NCBI RefSeq assembly: GCF_004010195.1
Contig: NC_057717.1
Span: forward strand, 73,726,399-73,790,398
Origin: Chiloscyllium plagiosum
Taxonomy: Eukaryota
Length of the DNA: 64,000 bases
Direction: 5' to 3'
Each line of letters starts with the position of its first letter. Positions within the stretch are counted from its first letter, which is position 1. The position numbers and the translations under genes were made by a program. Under the pieces are notes generated by a model. The model did no database searches. It saw nothing but the letters and a program-made list of their open reading frames with translations, and was not told the origin of the DNA. Of this stretch, positions 7,450 through 59,738 are shown one piece after another.

Positions 7450-10400
7450 TTTTTTTCTTTTTCTTCTTTTGTTTTCTTTGTTATTCTTAACCCCACATTA
7501 CCGACTAACTGCAGTAGTGCTTATTTTTCCCAGCACACATGTTGTGTGTGTGTGTGTGTGTGCAGGGGTAGGACACAGTGAAGAACAACAAGTGTGCAAA
7601 TCGTTATTTGTATTCCACCACCATGAAGAAAGAAAACACCTGAGTGGCCAATGACAAGCAATACCCTTCTCATCAAAAGGCAATGCTGCGTGATTAAAAA
7701 CAAAGGTGAAGGGGAGGGCCGAGATTAATTCTAAATAGAGTTGGAGGGGAAAATAAAACACTCCAATCCCTGCGGTACCCACATCTCCTGAACAGCTCCT
7801 GGGGGTTCATTGACACCACATGCTCCTTCTCCAGGGCACCTGGGCTCTGACATAACTGCAGATGAGAGTCAAGCAATTGGCCATAACGACCCCTTCCTCG
7901 GCCCGCTGTCTGCACCTGTTTATGGACAGTTTGGCCAGACCCAGGATCAGATCCACTCGGAGATTCTGTGACTCACCCTCTGCACCAGGTGCTCAAAGAT
8001 CAGGAGCGTGGGTCTAAAGTGCAGTCACCAACAGAGGAGAAGGTTCTCCAGAAAACTGAAAAGGGAATCAAAATGCCTGCACCCCATATATATGTGTTGC
8101 ATGGTCTCCACAGAACGACAGAGCAAGCCGTTGGGTTGAGAGCCCATGACCCACTGCAATCTGTGGTTGCAGGGGACTGCTGCGTGTACCATTCTCCACC
8201 CAGATCACCAAGAGAAAGGGGGGAGGACTCCGACATAGAGAGACGTCCACTGGGGATCCTCACTGCCTGGTGGCAAATGGGCATGCCGTGTTGTGGATGA
8301 GAGAAAAGAGGTGGATGTTGTACAGCAGCATCTGTATAATTCCCACCGTGATATGTCCCTGAAGGAGACAAAACTAAAGTTCCAGAGTCAGCTCAGGTTG
8401 TGTGGGGCACAGGCTCCCGCGGGATGTGATATTGCATCCAGGCAGAGGTAAACGCGGACGGGATTCCACTGCACACCTGAACATCCTCCAACTGGTGCAT
8501 TATGTCGGGTTTGGGCACCACCATTCTACAGCGTCGAATAGCAGTGGACACGAATGGCAGTGGACATCTACTGCTGCCCTGCTTGCTATATCCTGTGACA
8601 ACATCCAGCCCAGACACCCGCCACCCAGCATGTCCCCGACCCTGGTCAGCCTCGCCGCCATGGCTCTGCCCTCCTACAAACCAATCGTACCCACAAGTAC
8701 GGAGGTGAACATTCCTGAGCAATGGCTCCCTGTCGACAGCCACTAATCCTGCCGGAAGGTAGGTCCGACGCGATTCGACCATGTTTCAGACAGTGATCAG
8801 GTCGAGGTAAAAGACACACAAAATTCTGAGAGCAAACTCCAAGCCATCACAGTCAGTGAACAGAAGCTGCATGTCTTAGTTGAGGTTACACACCTGGTGG
8901 AAAAATATTCATTACCAGGGTGCACGACCGACGAGGAGACCCAACATAAAGATATCACTGCAAGGCCTGAAGTGAAAAGTCACCACCTGGGTGCAAATGC
9001 ACACCAGCGACTGACCGGCCTCCTCAGAAGGGAGACTCAGAGCCTGTGGGGGTGACCCAGTGCGTCTTTTTGTCAAAGTCGAAGTGAACCAACATTCATT
9101 AGATGTCAGCGACAAAACCAAGATCAGGGCCCAAAGGGGCGAGCTGCTACCACAGTATGGTGGCCACCAGCTGGTTTATGACAAGCACTCGAGTTCTGTA
9201 AGACAGGACTTGGAGCAGTCCTGTCCAGCGGCCTAGGTAAACCGAGACATCAGTCTCCAGCCACGCTGAGGTAGACACCAAGGTAGAGAAGATCAGTGCT
9301 ACTCCAGCTTAAACTCCGTAACATCTCTGGCAAAAATTTCATCCACCACGGACCGACCAGAGGTCTGGAACCTTTGGCCCGGATGATCCTGGCGGAAGAT
9401 GCCGCCGAGTTCGCCGCCTGGCACTCATGAATCCTCCCGAGGTCAGCCGGGTCAGTGAAAGTGAGGAGCACGTCAGCAGCATAAGCCGAGAGGACCACCC
9501 TTGTGCCTGCGCTGTGCAGAACCAGCCCGGACATCCTCCTCCACAAAAGGAACATGAAAGGCTCCACGCACAGAGAACACAGTTGGGCAGACAGTGGGCA
9601 GCCTCTTCTCCCAAAGTGAAGGAGCGCTCTCAGGGTCCCGTTAACTTTAACTAGATACTCTGCAATGGTGTACAAAAGTCCAAGCTGGACGGCGAAGTGC
9701 GTCCTGAGCCCGAATGCCCGCAGAGTCCCAAGCAGGGAGTCGTGATCGACCCTGTCGAATGCATTCTCCTGGACGAGAGGCAGTAAGGCACTCGGCAGAG
9801 CAGCCGGTCAACAGAAATGAATCAGGTTTCGAATGAGATGGACATTGTCGTGTATCCATCGGCTCGGGACCGTGTAGGACGGGTCTGGGTAAATCATGTG
9901 GGACAGCACGGAAACCAGATGAGAAACCAACACGATGGTGAACATTTTGTAATCCGTGCTAAGAAGGGAGACTAGACGCCAGTTCGTTAAGGAACGAATA
10001 TTCCCCTTCTTCAGCAACAACACGATGACTGTCCTGCACCAAGGAAGGTACAGCTCTCCGGCAGTTAGACATTCCCCAGGAACTGTGCGTAGTCGCTCCC
10101 CAGGACGTCCCAGAATGCCCTGAAGAACTCTACAGTCAGCCCATCCGGTCTATCTAACCCTGAGAGCAGGTCGAAGGTGTCAGTCAACTCCTTTAAGGTA
10201 ACGGGGTTGTTGAGCCTTCCTGCATCCTCCAGGCTGAGCTGCAGCATGTCCTCCTACAGAACTCTGTGAGCATCCTTGCTCTACGGATCTGGAGAGAACT
10301 GACCCATGTAAGAGGAGTGGATTTGGAGCCTGACACACTTCGGATCCGAGTTGAGGGACTCGTTATCGGCAAGCAGCACAAAGAGATACTGACGGGTGGC

Positions 10401-22772: not shown

Positions 22773-22815
22773 ATGAATATCTTACCTCTCTGCACGCTGC
22801 TTCAGCTTTTGGCAG
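22773..22815 (+). CDS. IgSF VJ-C1 receptor exon 1: leader peptide MNILPLCTLLQLLA(V)
   Basis: ATG, short hydrophobic run, CAG|GTTTGA donor in phase 1 that matches the V exon. Confidence 0.75.
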
Positions 22816-23372
22816 GTTTGACTGACTTACTTTAAAATTTCAGTGTACTTCTGGTGAACGATGAAAGAGAAATTTGGTCAAGAGAATTCTTAAGTGCTGA
22901 ATTATTTGTGACGAAGAACTCTACTCTCAAATGACTGTAAATTAAACAGTTTTAGCATATTTCGTGGGTTGTAAAAGGGGAACCGGGTGAAAAGTCAATT
23001 TACAGCTCTGGGTCAGTATTCAGTCTTCCATCAAAGTGATGGAAACAGTAATTACGTTAATTATAGAATTGCTATTTGCCAGATCATCCTCTGCCCCTCT
23101 GTGCAAACTTATTTTTTCCACTTTGAATTTATGACCGTAGTTATAAGTATTTTCATTGCTGGTATAGGTTCTTTCTATCGTTCCTTCGTTCTTTATTTCT
23201 TTCTCCTCCTATTGATTCAAGTTTCTCAATTATCGATTTATATAATTCGTTATTTTGATTTATAGTCATTCCGGAAAAATGATGCTTTCCACACTTCAAC
23301 CATAAAATCTGTGCTAAGCAGGCAATTTTGTGAAGCTCATCAGAATTGTTTGTAATACACTCTGTTTTATAG

Positions 23373-23711
23373 TTACTGTCCCTCAGAAAACGTTCCCGCA
23401 GATGCCAGCGCATCAGATGGTCTCAATTGGAAACACAGTTAAATTGCATTGTCATACGGGTCAGTTGATTTATGATGCCGTTCTATGGTATAAACAACAG
23501 CTGCGAGAACGTTTGCAATTCGTTTACACCGTGGGCAAGCACTTACCTCCAGATGGAAGATTTTCTGGAGAAGTGAACAACAAATCCACTGAGTATTCGC
23601 TTGTGATTCGCAATATCCAGAGAAATGATTCTGGTATATATTACTGCTCCAATAGGAAATCGTACCTTAACCCCTTAGTATTCGGAAATGGATCAAAAGT
23701 CCTCATAACAG
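23373..23711 (+). CDS. IgSF VJ-C1 receptor exon 2: V-set domain with germline-joined J segment
   Basis: Acceptor ttttatag. Motifs G.TVKLHC, WYKQQ, RFSG, YSLVIRNIQRNDSGIYYC and J motif FGNGSKVLIT. Donor G|GTAAGA. Phase 1 at both ends. Confidence 0.95.
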
Positions 23712-23798
23712 GTAAGAATAGCAACAGACTTACAGATTTCACTATCAATAATCAACAACGTTAACTCATATTTTTATGTTATCTCCCAAAATCATCAG

Positions 23799-24101
23799 GC
23801 CGACCCAAAATAATCATTTTGTCTACACCGCTGGATGAAATGTTTCCTTTGGAATTTGTCCCATTGATGTGTTTAGTGAGCAACGTGATATCCGATACTG
23901 CTGTCATCGACTGGAATATATCCACTTGGGATGCTAAGGGTTGGTCAGATTTTGTGACAATGAATTCTGCCACGGCATACAGTATCATAAGTCACATCAG
24001 AGTTCCAGCAGAAGCGTGGAAATATGATACTGTCTGTACTTGCTCAGTTCAAATCAACTCAACTGCAATTCTTGTCAGTGAAAAGCTCTTATATCAGAGA
24101 G
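23799..24101 (+). CDS. IgSF VJ-C1 receptor exon 3: C1-set-like constant domain
   Basis: Follows an 87-nt intron. GRPKIIIL...LMCLVSN...VIDWN...YSIISHIRVPAEAWKYDTVCTCSV. Donor G|GTAAAT. Phase 1 at both ends. Confidence 0.9.
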
Positions 24102-25479
24102 GTAAATATTGGACATCACAGTTGATCTTTCGGGTTAATTTGAATATTAGATTTTATTGTGAATAATACGTGCTTTCATCCATTAACGGTGCTCCCTTTC
24201 TTTGCATCAATGTCTGAATTTTCAAACAATTACCTCCTTCAGATAACTCAATCGAAATTTAACTTATTGAATGATTATGAGAATCCGTTGAAGTAATGCA
24301 TGGTCTGACCGTCTTCTGCTTAAAATGGAAAAAGAATGATCTAATTCGAGTTCACTACGTTCTCTGATAATATTTCTGAATTGTTCTCTGTGTTTCATAG
24401 CATTCATATCACAGAAATACATAATGTAGCTAAAAACAATCAGTGATTAAAACGAAATTAACATTTATTTAACTGTTCGTTCAAGGATCTTCCAAAATAT
24501 TTATTTTGATGAAGCTATCACAATATTTGGCTGTCTTTATCCCACGAGTATTTAAGAAATCTGAGTGCTTCATGTCCACGTCAAAAGATGTTGTCCAATA
24601 CTATCCTATCAAATTATTTCACAAGCCGAGTTCCTCTTTCAGAGCAACAACAAAAGATAGGTTTTTCAATTATTTTAATTGGTTCAAACATTATCTTCTC
24701 GTCTCACTACAGTAAATCATTTTCTTGAATGTTCTCCACTGCATGTATATACATTTGCAATTGAGCAGCATATCGGTCCATCATGCTTAAAGTTTGAGTA
24801 AATCAATATTCGTTTGGCGTAATCCATCACTTGTTATATTGCTTTGCAACTCTGTGTTTGCTGATGTAAACTTTTATCCTTCACTTTGGTCCTTATCAGC
24901 CTATGTGAATTTACATAATTTGAACTTTTTTTCCACATAGCGCCAATCACCTGCTATTGGGAAAAAAAGAGTCCACAAAATATTTCATCCAACAGAGATA
25001 ATTAAGGATTATTTAGTTGAATATAGTTGTGGAAAGCAAAATGGGTTTTGGATAAAGATTTTGACTTCAAATCACCATTCAAGTCATGAAAAGTTATAAA
25101 TTGGGGCGAGGACTGGTTGTGAGGGATGTAAATATTTATGGAACTGATGTCAAAAATATTTCAGATAGCATTTCTAAGCGAACACTTTAAGATTAAATGA
25201 TGAAAGGCGATGTGAACTTTATGTAATTCAATAAATTTGTGCCTCACACATCAATATCTTCACACTTCAAAATCTTCACCCTTCTCAACAGACACAAATT
25301 ATTGTTTGTTACGGAAAATATAAAACTGGCAATATGGATGAAACGATGTGCAACAGAAACGAGAAAAGCAGCTGTTGTTTGGAACAGATAAACAGATGTA
25401 GAAGTACAAACAGACGTTTAGATTTTGCGTTAATACAGCAATTTGTAGAAATTTGCAAATGTACATTCTGCCGAACAGG

Positions 25480-26660
25480 ATGATACTTGCAAAGTTCTGT
25501 TGTTCTATAAAACGGACACCAGTAAGATCACATGGAATGCAGGGAGAGTTAGACATTTGGAAACATAATTGGCCTGAATGTAGAAAAGAGAGTCTCGCGG
25601 TGGATGGTTGATTTTTGAATTGAAGGCCTGTGACAATTGGTGTGCCACAAGGATTGGTGCTATGTCCCCTGCTTTTTTTCCATTTAGGTAAATGATTTGG
25701 ATGCGAACATAGGAGGCATGATTAGTAGATGTTCAGATGTCACCAAAGTTGTTGGTGTAGTGGACAACCAAGAAGGTTAACTCAATGTACAATTGGACGT
25801 TGGTCAAATGGGCTAATGGGTTAAGGAGTGGCAGATGGAGTTCAATTTAGATAAAGATGACGTGCTGCATTTTTGTAGGCAAACCAGGGAGGGACTTATA
25901 CAGATAATGGTAAGGTCCTGTGAGTGTTGCTGAACAAAGAACGTTGAAGTGCAGGTTCACAACTACTGAAAATGGGAATCGTGCATAGAGAGGATTGTAA
26001 AGAAGGCTTTTGATCTACTTGTGAGTTAGTACACTGCGTCTAGTAATTGAAAATAATATTGCACCTGTACACGACATTGTTTAGGCCACATTTGGAATAC
26101 TCCCTTCTATTCTGATCTCTCTGATGAAGAGAGGCTGTGCGAAACTTTAAAAAGTTCAGAAAAGATTTGCAAGGAAGGTTCGAAACTTTAAAAAGTTCAG
26201 AAAAGATTTGCAAGGAAGGTTCCGTGTTTGAAGAGTTTGAGCTATAGGTAAAGTATTAATGGTTGTGGTTGATGTTGCCTGGAGTGTCCGAGGTAGAGAG
26301 GTGATCATTCAGAAGTTTATAAAATCATGAAGGACATGTGGCGAGTGAAGACCCAAGGTCTTTTCTACAGAGTAGGGGAAAAGGTTTAAGTTGAGAGGGG
26401 ATAGATTGAAAAGGGACTGAGAGGTAACTTATTCATGCAGAGGATCATGGGTATATGGAGTGAGTTACCCGAGGAAATGGTGGACGCTGCTACAATTACA
26501 ATATCTAAAAGCCATCATGAGGGTTATATGAATAGCAACGTTTAGAGGGATATGGGCCAGATGCTGGCAAAATAAGACTGGATTAAAGTGGGTGTATGGA
26601 TAGCATGGACAAGTTCGAAAGAACGGCCTCTTTATGTGTTGTACATCTGTATGACTCTAC
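25480..26660 (+). mobile_element. Old CR1 3' fragment in intron 3
   Basis: Degenerate RT/3' sequence (gtgccacaaggattggtgct, gagtggcagatggagttcaat) with a tatgactcta-type tail. Confidence 0.8.
26140..26221. repeat. Perfect 41-bp tandem duplication
   Basis: cgaaactttaaaaagttcagaaaagatttgcaaggaaggtt occurs twice. Confidence 0.9.
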
Positions 26661-26871
26661 GATTCTGCGATTGTTTCTTTCCAGGCATGCCTCTCCTTCC
26701 TTTTTTCTCTCTCCATGTTTCCGTCTGTCTTCGATTTAATTTAATTCAGGACAAATATGAGTTGCACAATCGAGCCAGAATCGCCAGCTATTTTTGCATT
26801 GATGCGTCTCCTGAGCTGTCATTCGCATCCGTTGTTAATGTGCATTTTAGCTGTATCTCTGTCTTCCTTAG

Positions 26872-26985
26872 AACCACCACACATCACTTGCCTTTTGATG
26901 TTTCCTGGGGCTATAATGGTGATGCTTGTCCTTGTCGTGATGCTTACTGTTTTCATGGGATGCCGCTGCAGGAATTGTGACTTAG
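26872..26985 (+). CDS. IgSF VJ-C1 receptor exon 4: stalk and transmembrane (EPPHITCLLMFPGAIMVMLVLVVMLTVFMGCRCRNCDL)
   Basis: Pyrimidine-rich acceptor ctctgtcttccttag, ~22-aa hydrophobic helix, donor G|GTAGGA, phase 1/1. An alternative in-frame acceptor would start the exon at 26851. Confidence 0.85.
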
Positions 26986-27106
26986 GTAGGATGTGTCCTT
27001 TAATGCTACAAATTATTCATGTTCTTGTGTTCTTCTATTCTTACCTCAAGGAACCTAATTAGTGCAATGTAATTTTAAAATGATCTAACTGATTTCGTTA
27101 CATCAG

Positions 27107-27162
27107 GTAACTGGAACACCAGTGAGAAATCAGAATTTCGAATACATGTTGCAAAGCAAGAG
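27107..27162 (+). CDS. IgSF VJ-C1 receptor exon 5: cytoplasmic (GNWNTSEKSEFRIHVAKQE)
   Basis: Branch point CTAAC at ~27085, acceptor catcag, perfect donor GAG|GTAAGT, phase 1/0. Confidence 0.8.
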
Positions 27163-27299
27163 GTAAGTGCATGAAAATTGATTTTCGTTTTCTCATCAAA
27201 ATGTGTAAATCCTTACACTAGTTTTATGGAACTTTTGACAGAAACGATTATCGTGATAGATTTATAATCAATGCAAGATGCCACTATTTATCATTTTAC

Positions 27300-28425
27300 A
27301 AAGGGACAAATAAGCTGAAGAGCAGGGCTAAGAGGTGGCAAATGGAGGTTAATGCAGAAAAGTGTGAAGTGATTCACATTGGAAAGAGCAAAAGACGTGC
27401 AGAGTACTGGACTAATTATAAGACTCGTGGTAGTGTGGGCGAGCAGAGAGACCTCGGAGTCCATGCACATAGATCCCTGGAAGTTGCAACCCAGATTGAT
27501 CGGGTTTTTAAGACGGCATACGGTGTGTTAGCCTTTATTAGTAGACCATTGGGTTATAGAACCATGAGTTCATGCTGCAGCTGCGTAAAACTCTGATGCG
27601 GCAGCACTTGGAGGATTGTGGACAGTTCTGGTCGCCTCATTATAGGAAGGATGTGGAAGCTTTAGAAAGGTTTCAGAGGAGATTTACTCGGCTGTTGTCT
27701 AGAACAAAGAGAAGTTCTTACGATGAAAGACTGAGGAATTTGAAGCTGTTTTCGTTGGAGAGAAGAAGGTTGAGAGGTGACTTAATTGAGACATATAAAA
27801 TAATGAGAGGGTAAGACAGGGTGGACAGTGAGAGCTATTTTCCTCAGATGGTGATTTAGATTAGATTACAGTGTGGAAACAGACCCTTCGGCCCAACAAT
27901 TCCACACCGACCCGCCGAAGCGAAACCCACCCATATCCCTACATTTACCCCTTACCTAACACTACAGGCAATTTAGTACGGCCAATTTACCTGACCCTGC
28001 ACATCTTTGGTGGGAGGAAACCCATGCAGACACGGGGAGAACGTGCAAACTCCAGTCAGTCGCCTGAGGCGGGAATTGAACCCGAGTCTCTGGCGCTGTG
28101 AGGCAGCAGTGCTAACCACTGTGCCACCATGCCGTGATGGCTAGCATGACGGTGCAGAGATTTAAATTCTGGGTTGGCAGATATAGGACAGATATCAGAG
28201 TTAGTTTATTTATTCAGAGACTAAATAGGGGCATGGAATACATTGCCTTGCAACAGTAGTAAACTCGCCATCTTTATTGGCATTTCAATGTTCATTGGAT
28301 AGTCATATGGATGAAAATGGAATAGCGTAGCTTAGGTGGACTTCAGAAACGTTTCACAGATCAGTGCAGCATCAAAGTTCAAAGGGACTGTACTGCGTTG
28401 TAATGTTCTGTGTTCTATGTTCTCA
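27300..28425 (+). mobile_element. CR1 3' fragment in intron 5, interrupted by an HE1 SINE
   Basis: KCEVIHIG, QFWSPHYRKDVEALE and RLRGDLIETYKIM; tgttctatgttct tail at ~28410. Confidence 0.9.
27856..28133 (-). mobile_element. HE1-type tRNA-derived SINE, full length
   Basis: The minus strand starts ggcatggtggcacagtggttagcactgctgcctcacagcgcc with A box and B box (GGTTCAATTCC) and ends in a (TAATC)n tail. Flanking GTGAT duplication at 27851 and 28134. Confidence 0.9.
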
Positions 28426-28902
28426 GTGAAAGCAAATGAAAATGGAAATTTTAATATTTAATATCTGCAGTTATATATAATTACAATATGTATATTCTAT
28501 GCAAAGACTGCAGGATAAAAAGAAATTGTATTCTGAGAACAGCCAATACAGATATCGAGATCATGTACGGAAGAACAATAGATCTAGCTGTAATGATTGG
28601 TTTGTTTAAAACATGTCTATGGATAGAAGTGAGAATCATTTGCTCTGTTCTGGGTTTGTGCCAAGCGGTAAAAAGGCTTAAAATAAGCTCATGCATGAGT
28701 ACAGACATGACACATTGAGCGGCATGGATATCTGGAAAATACTCATCCATTTCTTCTTATCTGTTGAAATTAATTGGAAATAACAACGGCTGTATGGAGA
28801 TAAAGATACTTCCAACTGAAGGGTTATAAGGTGGAATTGTGGTATTGCTGCGCACTGTTCATTTATTTCTCAGATAATAACCGTTTTTGATTTATTCCCC
28901 AG

Positions 28903-28947
28903 ACTCTTTATGCTCACTTGGCTTTTACTGAAGATCCAATACTTTGA
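28903..28947 (+). CDS. IgSF VJ-C1 receptor exon 6: TLYAHLAFTEDPIL* (tyrosine motif)
   Basis: Acceptor tttattccccag in phase 0; gives a TxYxxL motif then TGA. The spliced CDS totals 900 nt (299 aa). Confidence 0.72.
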   Translation, partial: TLYAHLAFTEDPIL

Positions 28948-56886: not shown

Positions 56887-59738
56887 TCCAGATACCATCC
56901 AGAGGGTGGTTAGTGGTTAAAAAAGGAGGGGGTGTGGCGTTGCTAATTAGAAATGGTGTAATGGCTGCAGAAAGCCAGTTCGAGGGGCATCTGCTTTTGG
57001 AGGTAGTATGGGCTGAAGTCAGAAATAGGAAAGGAGCAGTCACCTTGTTGGGGGTTTACTATAGGCCCCCCAATAGCAGCGGAGATGTGAAGAAACAGAT
57101 TGGGAAACAGATTTTGGACTGGTGCAGAAGCCACAGGGTAGTAGTCATGGGCGATTTCAACTTCCCAAATATTGATTGGAAGCTCTTTAGATCAAGTAGA
57201 TTGGATGGGGCAGTGTTTGTGCAGTGTTTCCAGGAAGCTTTTCTAACCCAGTATGTAGATTGTCCGACCAGAGGGGAGGCCATTTTGGATTTGGTACTCT
57301 GTAATGAACCGGGACAAGTGATGNNNNNNNNNNNNNNNNNNNNNNNNNNNNNNNNNNNNNNNNNNNNNNNNNNNNNNNNNNNNNNNNNNNNNNNNNNNNN
57401 NNNNNNNNNNNNNNNNNNNNNNNNNNNNNNNNNNNNNNNNNNNNNNNNNNNNNNNNNNNNNNNNNNNNNNNNNNNNNNNNNNNNNNNNNNNNNNNNNNNN
57501 NNNNNNNNNNNNNNNNNNNNNNNNNNNNNNNNNNNNNNNNNNNNNNNNNNNNNNNNNNNNNNNNNNNNNNNNNNNNNNNNNNNNNNNNNNNNNNNNNNNN
57601 NNNNNNNNNNNNNNNNNNNNNNNNNNNNNNNNNNNNNNNNNNNNNNNNNNNNNNNNNNNNNNNNNNNNNNNNNNNNNNNNNNNNNNNNNNNNNNNNNNNN
57701 NNNNNNNNNNNNNNNNNNNNNNNNNNNNNNNNNNNNNNNNNNNNNNNNNNNNNNNNNNNNNNNNCCTTGGTTGACGAGGGAGGTTGAATGTCTTGTAAGG
57801 AGAAAGAAGGAGTCTTACATAAGGTTGAGGAAACAAGATTCAGACAGAGCGTTGGAGGGATACAGGATAGCCAGAAGGGACCTGAAGAAAGGGATTAGGA
57901 GAGCTAAGAGAGGGCATGAAAAATCGTTGGCGGATAGGATCAAGGATAACCCCAAGGCATTTTATGCGTATGTGAGAAACATGAGAATGACAAGAACGAG
58001 TGTAGGTCCGATCAAGGACAGTAGTGGGAGACTGTGTTTTGAGTCGGAAGAGATAGGAGAGGTCTTGAACAAGTACTTCTCTTCAGTATTTACGAACGGG
58101 AGGGACCGTATTGTAGAAGAGGAGAGTGTGAAATGGACTGGTAAGCTAGAAGAGATACCTGTTAGGAAGGAAGATGTGTTGGACATTTTGAACAACTTGA
58201 GGATAGACAAGTCCCCCGGGCCTGACGGGATATATGCTAGGATTATGTGGGAAGCAAGAGAGGAAATTTCAGTGCCGTTGGCAATGATCTTCTCGTCTTC
58301 ACTGGCAACGGGGGTGGTACCAGGGGACTGGAGAGTAGCGAATGTTGTGCCTCTGTTCAAAAAAGGGAATAGGGATAACCCCGGGAATTACAGGCCTGTT
58401 AGTCTTACTTCTGTGGTAGGCAAAGTAATGGAAAGGGTACTGAGGGATAGGATTTATGAGTATCTGGAAGGTCACTGCTTGATTAGGGACAGCCAGCATG
58501 GATTTGTGAGGGGTAGGTCTTGCCTTACAAGTCTTATTGAATTCTTCGAGGAGGTGACCAAGCATGTGGATGAGGGTAGAGCAGTATACATGGATTTTCG
58601 TCAGGCATTTGATAAGGTTCCCCATGGTAGGCTTATGTGGAAAGTCAGGAGGCATGGGATAGAGGGAAATTTGGCCAATTGGATAGAAAACTGGCTAACT
58701 GGTCGAAGTCGGAGAGTGGTGGTAGATGGTAAATATTCAGCCTGGAGCCCAGTTACAAGTGGAGTTCCGCAGGGATCAGTTCTGGGTCCTCTGCTGTTTG
58801 TAATTTTTATTAATGACTTAGATGAGGGAGTCGAAGGGTGGGTCAGTAAATTTGGAGATGATACGAAGATAGGTGGAGTTGTGGACAGTGAGGAGGGCTG
58901 TTGTCGGCTGCAGAGGGACTTAGATATGATGCAAAGTTGGGCTGAGGAGTGGCAGATGGAGTTCAACCCTGCCTAGTGTGAGGTTGTCCATTTTGGAAGA
59001 ACAAATAAGAATGCGGAATACAGGGTTAATGGTAGGGTTCTTAGTCAGGTGGAGGAACAGAGGGATCTTGGGGTCTATGTACATAGATCTTTGAAGGTTG
59101 CCACTCAGGTGGATAGAGTTTGTAAGAAGGTCTATGGAGTATTATCGTTCATTAGCAGAGGGATTGAATTCAAGAGTCGTGAAGTGATGTTGCAGCTGTA
59201 CAGGACTTTGGTTAGGCCACAGTTGGAGTACTGTGTGCAGTTCTGGTCGCCTCACTTTAGGAAAGATGTGGAAGCTTTGGAGAGGGTGCAGAGAAGGTTT
59301 ACCAGGATGTTGCCTGGAATGGAGAGGAAGTCGTACGGGGATAGGTTGAGAGTTCTCGGCCTTTTCTTGTTGGAACGGCGAAGGATGAGGGGTGACTTGC
59401 TAGAGGTTTATAAGATGATCAGAGGAATAGATAGAGTAGACAGTCAGAGACTTTTTTCCCGGGTACAACAGAGTGTTACAAGGGGACATAAATTTAAGGT
59501 GAAGGGTGGAAGGTATAGGGGGGATGTCAGGGGTATGTTCTTTACCCAGAGAGTGGTGGGGGCATGGAATGTGCTGCCTGTGGGAGTGGCAGAGTCAGAA
59601 TCATTGGTGACCTTTAAGTGGCAATTGGATAGGTACATGGATAGGTGCTTAAGCTAGGACAAATGTTCGGCACAACATCGTGGGCCAAAGGGCCTGTTCT
59701 GTGCTGTATTGTTCTATGTTCTATGTTCTATGTTCTAT
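56887..59738 (+). mobile_element. Young 5'-truncated CR1 LINE (EN-RT ORF2, one in-frame stop at 58974)
   Basis: ORFs 56913-58976 and 59049-59657 with [23 protein letters not shown] and FGDDTK; (TGTTCTA)4 tail at 59710-59737. Confidence 0.95.
57324..57764. other. Assembly gap (441 N)
   Basis: N run. Confidence 1.

Follow-up and report, generated by a model that had tools for sequence, protein, structure and literature searches.

What kind of receptor is encoded by a shark gene that has the variable (V), joining (J) and constant-type (C1) parts of an antigen-receptor chain but ends in a cytoplasmic tail of its own? This question is raised by a 64,000-nt stretch from the bamboo shark Chiloscyllium plagiosum (contig NC_057717.1, positions 73,726,399 to 73,790,398; in the following called the window), in which an earlier note, made from the letters alone, had outlined a non-rearranging VJ-C1 receptor gene. 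We found that this segment is the intact gene LOC122552145, encoding a 299-amino-acid type I membrane protein for which a RefSeq model already exists, without a functional name. Both this model and the membership of the gene in a large, conserved multigene family had escaped the earlier note. Sequence comparison shows that the gene is not a one-off but represents a conserved orthogroup within a multigene family found throughout elasmobranchs. We consider it likely that the product is a disulfide-linked, non-rearranging, inhibitory VJ-C1 receptor, with a tail motif resembling the immunoreceptor tyrosine-based inhibitory or switch motif (ITIM/ITSM); dimerization, inhibition, the cell type and the assignment to the PRARP class are predicted from the features described below.

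The gene consists of six exons, all bounded by GT..AG, that span positions 22773-28947 on the forward strand and add up to 900 nt (299 codons and the stop). The five introns of 557, 87, 2770, 121 and 1740 nt each follow the GT..AG rule, with phases 1-1-1-1-0. All six exon peptides are present, exact and collinear, in RefSeq XP_043550577.1 (P0109 in our set; “uncharacterized protein LOC122552145”, Chiloscyllium plagiosum), separated only by V, G, E and G, the junction residues predicted from the split codons; exon 1 corresponds to residues 1-14 and exon 2 to residues 16-127. The following features were delineated, including the transmembrane (TM) segment and a loop resembling the third complementarity-determining region (CDR3).

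22773..22815, + strand: exon 1, start codon and most of the hydrophobic split leader, MNILPLCTLLQLLA (14 codons), plus 1 nt; donor GT, phase 1
23373..23711, + strand: exon 2, end of the leader and V-set domain with germline-fused J; 339 nt, phase 1 to 1
23648..23680, + strand: CDR3-like loop SNRKSYLNPLV, 11 residues, between Cys106 and the J motif
23681..23710, + strand: J motif FGNGSKVLIT (G strand), including an N-G-S glycosylation sequon
23712..23798, + strand: J-C intron, 87 nt, GT..AG, with an in-frame stop inside
23799..24101, + strand: exon 3, C1-set constant-type domain (Pfam C1-set); 303 nt, phase 1 to 1
26872..26985, + strand: exon 4, short stalk, Cys235, uncharged TM segment and basic, Cys-rich stop-transfer sequence CRCRNCDL; 114 nt, phase 1 to 1
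26889-26891, + strand: codon of the membrane-proximal Cys235, in exon 4 before the TM segment
27107..27162, + strand: exon 5, cytoplasmic spacer (G)NWNTSEKSEFRIHVAKQE; 56 nt, ends in phase 0
28903..28947, + strand: exon 6, TLYAHLAFTEDPIL and stop; 45 nt
28903-28920, + strand: ITIM/ITSM-like T-x-Y-x-x-L motif (TLYAHL), beginning at the exon 5/6 junction

Neither a heptamer nor a nonamer of a recombination signal sequence (RSS) was found within positions 23300-24150. Read-through of the J-C intron is impossible because of the in-frame stop inside it. The earlier note had described a leader, V with an 11-residue loop and J in one exon without an RSS, a C1 exon 87 nt further on, a TM exon and two cytoplasmic exons, and every coordinate of this layout proved correct. 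Its consistent splice phases and its length of 299 amino acids agree with P0109, and its attribution to a cartilaginous fish was right, the Chiloscyllium plagiosum protein being identical. The tail was the point on which it went too far. The TM segment is indeed uncharged, without a basic residue, and a tyrosine is present, but the tail is not long: it extends ~41 residues past the hydrophobic segment, has a single Tyr and ends in ETLYAHLAF. Its reading of the gene as a cartilaginous-fish member of the germline-joined VJ-C1 class, possibly an inhibitory NK/T-cell receptor, is largely correct as to the kind of gene and would still apply as a candidate role.

Pfam and solved-structure searches were run for each exon separately, without joining the exons, while P0109 served as the query for the later family, alignment and PDB profile work. 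Exon 2 matched the Pfam V-set (E 7.5e-15, 55.5 bits, cut-off 26), and among solved structures the kappa VL-J regions aligned best, for example 4hjj_L with 43.0 bits (one domain), through FG-G-KV. The V framework is light-chain-like (WYKQ, GRFSGE, DSGIYYC, FGNGS). Exon 3 matched the Pfam C1-set (E 1.6e-5, 25.5 bits, cut-off 21), and no C2-set or I-set match was obtained for it in the Pfam scan; the assignment of the second domain to C1 rather than C2/I-set, which the earlier note had named as a test, thus held. Its best solved structures were the immunoglobulin (Ig) G domains CH1 (19.6 bits) and CH3 (17.7 bits), and the IgNAR C domain 4q97_A was matched with E 1.4e-5. In the PDB profile search with P0109, every one of the 60 chains shown was an antibody chain or an antibody construct; this search was swamped by antibodies and cannot separate the C1 types of Ig and of the T cell receptor (TCR). 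A Pfam scan of the family, made on the 44-member alignment without P0109, assigned the V-set to 44/44 and the C1-set to 36/44 members and listed no C2-set family.

The family itself was delineated by several searches. A HMMER library search with the C1 exon returned 74 proteins at E <= 0.001, 17 of them at E <= 1e-10; its single-domain matches were proteins of ~220-412 amino acids with an N-terminal V and the C1 domain at ~130-230. Searching with P0109 yielded 15 proteins at E <= 1e-8 among 406 candidates, and searching with Scyliorhinus torazame P0010 yielded 34 proteins at E <= 1e-10 among 1026 candidates. The V exon alone found no homologue in a search limited to proteins of 62-196 amino acids, a blank that therefore says little. 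Taken together, these searches reveal a multigene family of non-rearranging VJ-C1-TM receptors with members in at least 20 species of sharks and rays. Sharks are represented by Scyliorhinus torazame, S. canicula, Mustelus, Cetorhinus, Carcharodon, Rhincodon, Stegostoma, Hemiscyllium, two Chiloscyllium species, Heterodontus and Pristiophorus, and rays by Leucoraja, Rhinoraja, Hypanus, Pristis, two Mobula species and Narcine. More distant proteins with the same layout occur in the coelacanth Latimeria, the lungfish Protopterus and the turtles Pelodiscus, Pangshura, Gopherus and Chelonoidis. The coelacanth and turtle proteins also share the Cys before the TM segment and the tail Tyr; the turtle homologues matched P0010 with E 1.1e-19 to 1.8e-16, and they and the coelacanth protein P0040 are only automatically named. 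One lungfish protein (Protopterus annectens XP_043935111.1, P0027) shows two apparent V-like domains before a family-type C1 (V-V-C1).

About 60 public models belong to this family, all with automatic and mutually inconsistent names, among them “kappa light chain-like”, “lambda light chain-like”, “gamma-1 heavy chain-like”, “Ig heavy chain Mem5-like”, “lachesin-like”, “TCR alpha chain-like” and “uncharacterized”. As all source names are automatic, no orthology to a characterised gene emerged. The 1:1 orthologues of LOC122552145 are C. punctatum XP_072404824.1 (P0110; 91% identical), Hemiscyllium ocellatum XP_060676706.1 (P0083; 92%) and Rhincodon P0080 (76%); P0110 and P0109 fall in the 90% cluster of P0083. 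The orthologues are 299-300 amino acids long throughout, and the gene models of the four species have the same exon boundaries.

Several family members are found on single contigs in individual species. One Rhincodon contig carries P0080, P0082, P0084, P0086 and P0004, one Heterodontus contig P0088, P0089, P0091, P0092, P0014 and P0015, one Cetorhinus contig P0077-P0079 and P0019, and one C. plagiosum contig P0109, P0104/P0003, P0081 and P0094; in Stegostoma, several members likewise lie on a single contig.

To resolve the relationships within the family, we calculated a quick maximum-likelihood tree with 43 rows, whose root is arbitrary and which contains no named outgroups. From the 54 aligned rows, 11 were left out as fragments or truncated models (P0094, P0025, P0078, P0029, P0012, P0019, P0026, P0027, P0103, P0060 and P0065). 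P0109, P0110 and P0083 formed a clade (SH-aLRT 100) that was joined next by Rhincodon P0080 (99). Beyond these, the tree separates no fewer than five other orectolobiform lineages. Three of these are supported pairs joining Rhincodon with Stegostoma or C. punctatum, and the remaining ones are the single rows P0087, P0104 and P0081, the last of which pairs with Cetorhinus P0079. The J-bearing elasmobranch sequences (group A) formed one group with a support of 85, and the turtles and the coelacanth were placed outside it, on long branches.

In a separate elasmobranch subgroup B (support 99), the J is degenerate (“LQNGPTLLVG” being one example), and in some members the tail ends in Y-A-S-L-E-F. 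This subgroup includes P0015 (Heterodontus), P0032/P0116 (Rhinoraja), P0030/P0115 (Mobula) and P0058 (Stegostoma). The two groups are linked: Heterodontus P0015 shares its contig with group-A members, and a single Mobula birostris contig carries the subgroup-B protein XP_072139900.1 and the group-A protein XP_072139901.1, whose accession numbers directly follow each other. This accession numbering suggests that the A and B genes are adjacent in M. birostris. In P0015 and P0032/P0116, inspection by eye revealed an Arg within the hydrophobic segment, and the tail Tyr is absent. These subgroup-B proteins, set against the ITIM-like members, suggest paired activating and inhibitory forms.

The alignment of 44 sequences shows which parts of the receptor are under the strongest conservation. 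C41, W53, D100, G102, Y104, C106, C152, W166, S192 and C209 are invariant canonical Ig positions, and at least 90% of the 44 members retain G121 (in the J motif), C207, C235 (before the TM segment), Y288 and L291. A second 44-member alignment without P0109 retained the same residues, except L291. The conservation of the tail reaches past Y-x-x-L to E-T-L-Y-A-x-L-A-F. Among 28 group-A members, the mean column entropy was 0.94 bits in framework region 3, 0.96 in J and 1.24 in the last 14 residues, and it reached 2.06 in the CDR2-like loop, 2.00 in the CDR3-like loop and 2.00 in the TM segment. The CDR-like loops are thus the most variable part of the ectodomain, yet not hypervariable. A hypervariable, NITR-like diversified family was rejected on these loop values of 2.06 and 2.00 bits, next to 2.00 for the TM segment, and on orthogroups that are stable across genera. 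An FG-N-G-[ST] sequon at the J bulge (window 23681-23695, FGNGS) is present in 38/54 aligned rows, including the coelacanth and some turtles.

Among known receptors, PRARP resembles this family most closely in layout. PRARP was reportedly described by Fu et al. in 2019 (J Immunol) as having a single-exon VJ with a canonical J-like motif, a C1 domain in non-avian species, a TM segment and an ITIM. The chicken proteins are said to form disulfide-linked homo- or heterodimers, and PRARP is said to occur in B and T cells and from bony fish to birds, though not in cartilaginous fish. LOC122552145 matches this description in its non-rearranging single-exon VJ without an RSS, its C1 second domain, its TM segment and its cytoplasmic Tyr, as well as in a Cys that could give disulfide-linked dimers and in linked gene copies. 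It differs in its Tyr motif, which has Thr at -2 and is therefore ITIM/ITSM-like but not a strict ITIM, and in the expansion of the shark family into at least six orectolobiform orthogroups and a linked subgroup B with a degenerate J and, in some members, Arg in the TM segment. The coelacanth and turtle homologues share the layout and therefore fit the PRARP class. The gene family is probably the cartilaginous-fish branch of this class.

PRARP, NKp30 and UrIg figure as non-split VJ genes in a 2023 paper (Mol Biol Evol; PMC10751288), which cites Fu et al., and a CD28-family paper also counts PRARP among joined-VJ genes (PMC11599192). UrIg and UrIg2 also offer themselves for comparison. According to Flajnik et al. 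2025 (Science Advances), these have VJ followed by three or more C1 domains, with nine C1 domains in UrIg2, and the legend of Fig. 2 there draws a two-domain VJ + C1 gene as a hypothetical first step (PMC12227049). This first-step layout equals the ectodomain described here, and LOC122552145 further shares with UrIg/UrIg2 the non-rearranging VJ exon, the split leader, C1-type domains and the occurrence in elasmobranchs (PMC12227049). It differs in its inhibitory-type tail and in having just one C1 exon, which separates VJ from TM; this single C1 exon rules out membership in UrIg/UrIg2. Neither the word ITIM nor the word PRARP appears in the main text of the 2025 UrIg2 paper (PMC12227049).

With TCR and Ig light chains, the gene shares V-J plus C1, the split leader, phase-1 introns and the V-kappa-like framework, and with TCR chains also a connecting-peptide Cys by the membrane. 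Such chains come from V and J segments that are separate and bordered by RSS, with a basic TM residue in TCR chains and no TM segment in Ig light chains. In contrast to both, V and J of LOC122552145 lie in one exon without an RSS, the J-C intron is only 87 nt long, and the uncharged TM segment is followed by a signalling-type tail of its own. Membership among TCR chains or Ig light chains was rejected on the fused V-J, the lack of an RSS and the uncharged TM segment with the 41-residue tail behind it.

Starting from the observed gene structure, domain types, family and conserved Cys and Tyr, and building on what is established for Ig/TCR chains and for ITIM/ITSM receptors, we infer the following mode of action. 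In the manner of Ig and TCR chains, two chains would pair via the faces of their V and C1 domains, and the pre-membrane Cys235 would lock the pair by a disulfide bond. The V pair would bind a germline-fixed ligand. Upon engagement, a Src-family kinase could phosphorylate Tyr288, and the T-x-Y-x-x-L motif may then recruit SH2 phosphatases (ITIM mode) or SAP-type adaptors (ITSM mode), by which leukocyte activation would be damped.

Several observations weigh against this model of an inhibitory PRARP-type receptor. The C1-set score of LOC122552145 is modest (25.5 bits), and only 36/44 family members reach the C1-set threshold. The link to PRARP leans on automatically named turtle and coelacanth homologues at 23-29% identity. 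A glycan at the J bulge, if the sequon is used, would occupy the strand that normally forms the V-V interface and could hinder V-V pairing of the Ig type. In three sequencing runs guessed to be RNA, only 0.13, 0.11 and 0.06 of the sampled words were present. Thr at -2 together with Leu at +3 departs from the strict consensus of both ITIM and ITSM, and Y-x-x-hydrophobic is the consensus of a sorting signal, which YAHL fits.

This last point leads to the alternative that survives best, although we regard it as unlikely: a binding protein that stays at the surface or recycles, or a decoy, and in either case gives no inhibitory signal. Y-A-x-L would then be an endocytic or sorting signal, as the match of YAHL would allow, and soluble forms would be secreted binders. 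TM-skipping isoforms are indeed predicted for P0003, which is a paralogue in C. plagiosum, and for the Cetorhinus gene P0078, and the TM exon of LOC122552145 is symmetric as well. Yet the conserved stretch E-T-L-Y-A-x-L-A-F is longer than Y-x-x-L, as is usual for SH2-docking motifs. Moreover, the tails of group-B relatives finish with I/L-x-Y-A-S-L, in agreement with the classical ITIM, and some of these relatives have partners with Arg in the TM segment that lack the Tyr, the signature of paired inhibitory and activating receptors.

Regarding these isoforms themselves, P0003 is isoform X2 of C. plagiosum LOC122552429; in both it and P0078 the skipping is in frame, giving predicted soluble proteins that keep the tail peptide. 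In LOC122552145, the TM exon has 114 nt and runs from phase 1 to 1, so that skipping it would keep the frame.

Membership in another known non-rearranging family of the Ig superfamily (SIRP, NITR or NKp30) instead of the PRARP type is improbable. A V with a J-like strand and an inhibitory tail are common to NITR and SIRP. The second domain of NITRs, where present, is however of the I/C2 type and not C1, and NITRs are known only from bony fish. In LOC122552145, exon 3 matches the C1-set only, the CDR-like loops are moderately variable and the host is a shark, so NITR membership was rejected on the domain type and the organism. Otherwise, the likeness to NITRs extends to the germline VJ-continuous V, the type I membrane topology, inhibitory and activating forms and multigene clusters (PMC7916673).

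Closer to hand was SIRP-alpha, a near neighbour in the protein-language-model search, although such neighbours are leads only. In the atlas, the nearest entries to P0083 were three chordate clusters of its own kind, with 51-99 V-set + C1-set proteins of ~290 amino acids, followed by SIRP-alpha-like and TAPBPL clusters at 0.94-0.95. SIRP-alpha shares a V with a J-like strand, C1-set domains and ITIM signalling. SIRP proteins are built as V-C1-C1, with several tail tyrosines, whereas the product of LOC122552145 has one C1, one tail Tyr and a pre-membrane Cys. We rejected SIRP membership on the single C1 exon and the single tail Tyr, with no further Ig exon in the 64,000-nt window. From NKp30, the gene is set apart by its C domain and its uncharged TM segment, and this candidate was dropped. 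None of SIRP, NITR and NKp30 appeared among the 60 antibody-derived chains shown in the PDB profile search.

The surroundings of the gene bear on a further alternative. No second family gene was detected by tblastn of the exon peptides against the window. Among the 24 other open reading frames (ORFs) of at least 90 amino acids, 23 had no Pfam match and one encodes a reverse transcriptase, so LOC122552145 stands alone in the window. That the gene is silent or decaying, or that its two small 3′ exons are a modelling artefact, is very improbable. It does lie alone amid transposon debris, and exons 5 and 6 have merely 56 and 45 nt. Against this, the frame is open, the splice sites are canonical, and four species have models of 299-300 amino acids whose exon boundaries coincide. 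In both Hemiscyllium P0083 and Rhincodon P0080, 14/14 residues of exon 6 are identical, and exon 5 shows 78% and 79% identity, respectively.

The reverse-transcriptase ORF at 57768-58973 (+) matched Pfam RVT_1 with E 7.1e-31 and presumably belongs to a long interspersed nuclear element (LINE); it directly follows a run of 441 N at 57324-57764 (assembly gap or masked sequence). A V-like tblastn match at 8518-8571 (-), covering 18 residues to CDR1 and framework region 2 with E 0.002 in a GC-rich LINE cluster, was dismissed as chance, as the enclosing ORF has no Pfam match. Within intron 3, at ~26141-26223, a tandem duplication of ~41 nt (“...aaactttaaaaagttcagaaaagatttgcaaggaaggtt...” twice) was seen by eye in transposon-derived sequence.

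Finally, the gene almost certainly does not encode a chain that has a rearranging partner, be it a germline-joined Ig light chain or a TCR-like one. The V framework and J motif closest to V-kappa and the automatic names “kappa/lambda light chain-like” speak for such a chain, but they are opposed by TM and cytoplasmic exons conserved between species, a TM segment without a basic residue, a C1 whose similarity to Ig C domains is weak (19.6 bits to CH1), the lack of an RSS and 1:1 orthologues that keep length and tail. The earlier note had argued against both chains as well, and rightly so.

A search confined to the open-access literature turned up no report of a VJ-C1-TM-ITIM family in sharks. 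What appears to be new is the expanded family in cartilaginous fish, apparently unstudied in sharks, while the architecture itself was reportedly described already in 2019 in other vertebrates. In addition to UrIg and UrIg2, sharks and rays have retained an entire family of membrane receptors that consist of two domains, VJ and C1, and whose V is light-chain-like. Its members carry a pre-membrane Cys, as TCR chains do, and a conserved tail of the inhibitory type, and the family has recognisable relatives in coelacanth, lungfish and turtles. It would be the cartilaginous-fish anchor for the PRARP class, and its ~60 models can be used for studying linkage to the major histocompatibility complex (MHC) or the antigen-receptor complex. 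At present, the origin of Ig and TCR is approached through non-rearranging VJ-C1 genes (PMC10751288, PMC12227049).

A far-reaching possibility, which we hold to be unlikely, is that a two-domain VJ-C1 precursor from before RAG survives in this family across jawed vertebrates, in sharks, rays, coelacanth, lungfish and turtles, and that the linked A and B genes form TCR-like disulfide heterodimers that see a conserved self ligand, perhaps an MHC-like one. If true, the design of a V-C1 heterodimer with a membrane-proximal Cys would predate V(D)J recombination. Few inhibitory or activating leukocyte receptors are known from sharks and rays, and the family supplies candidates for both.

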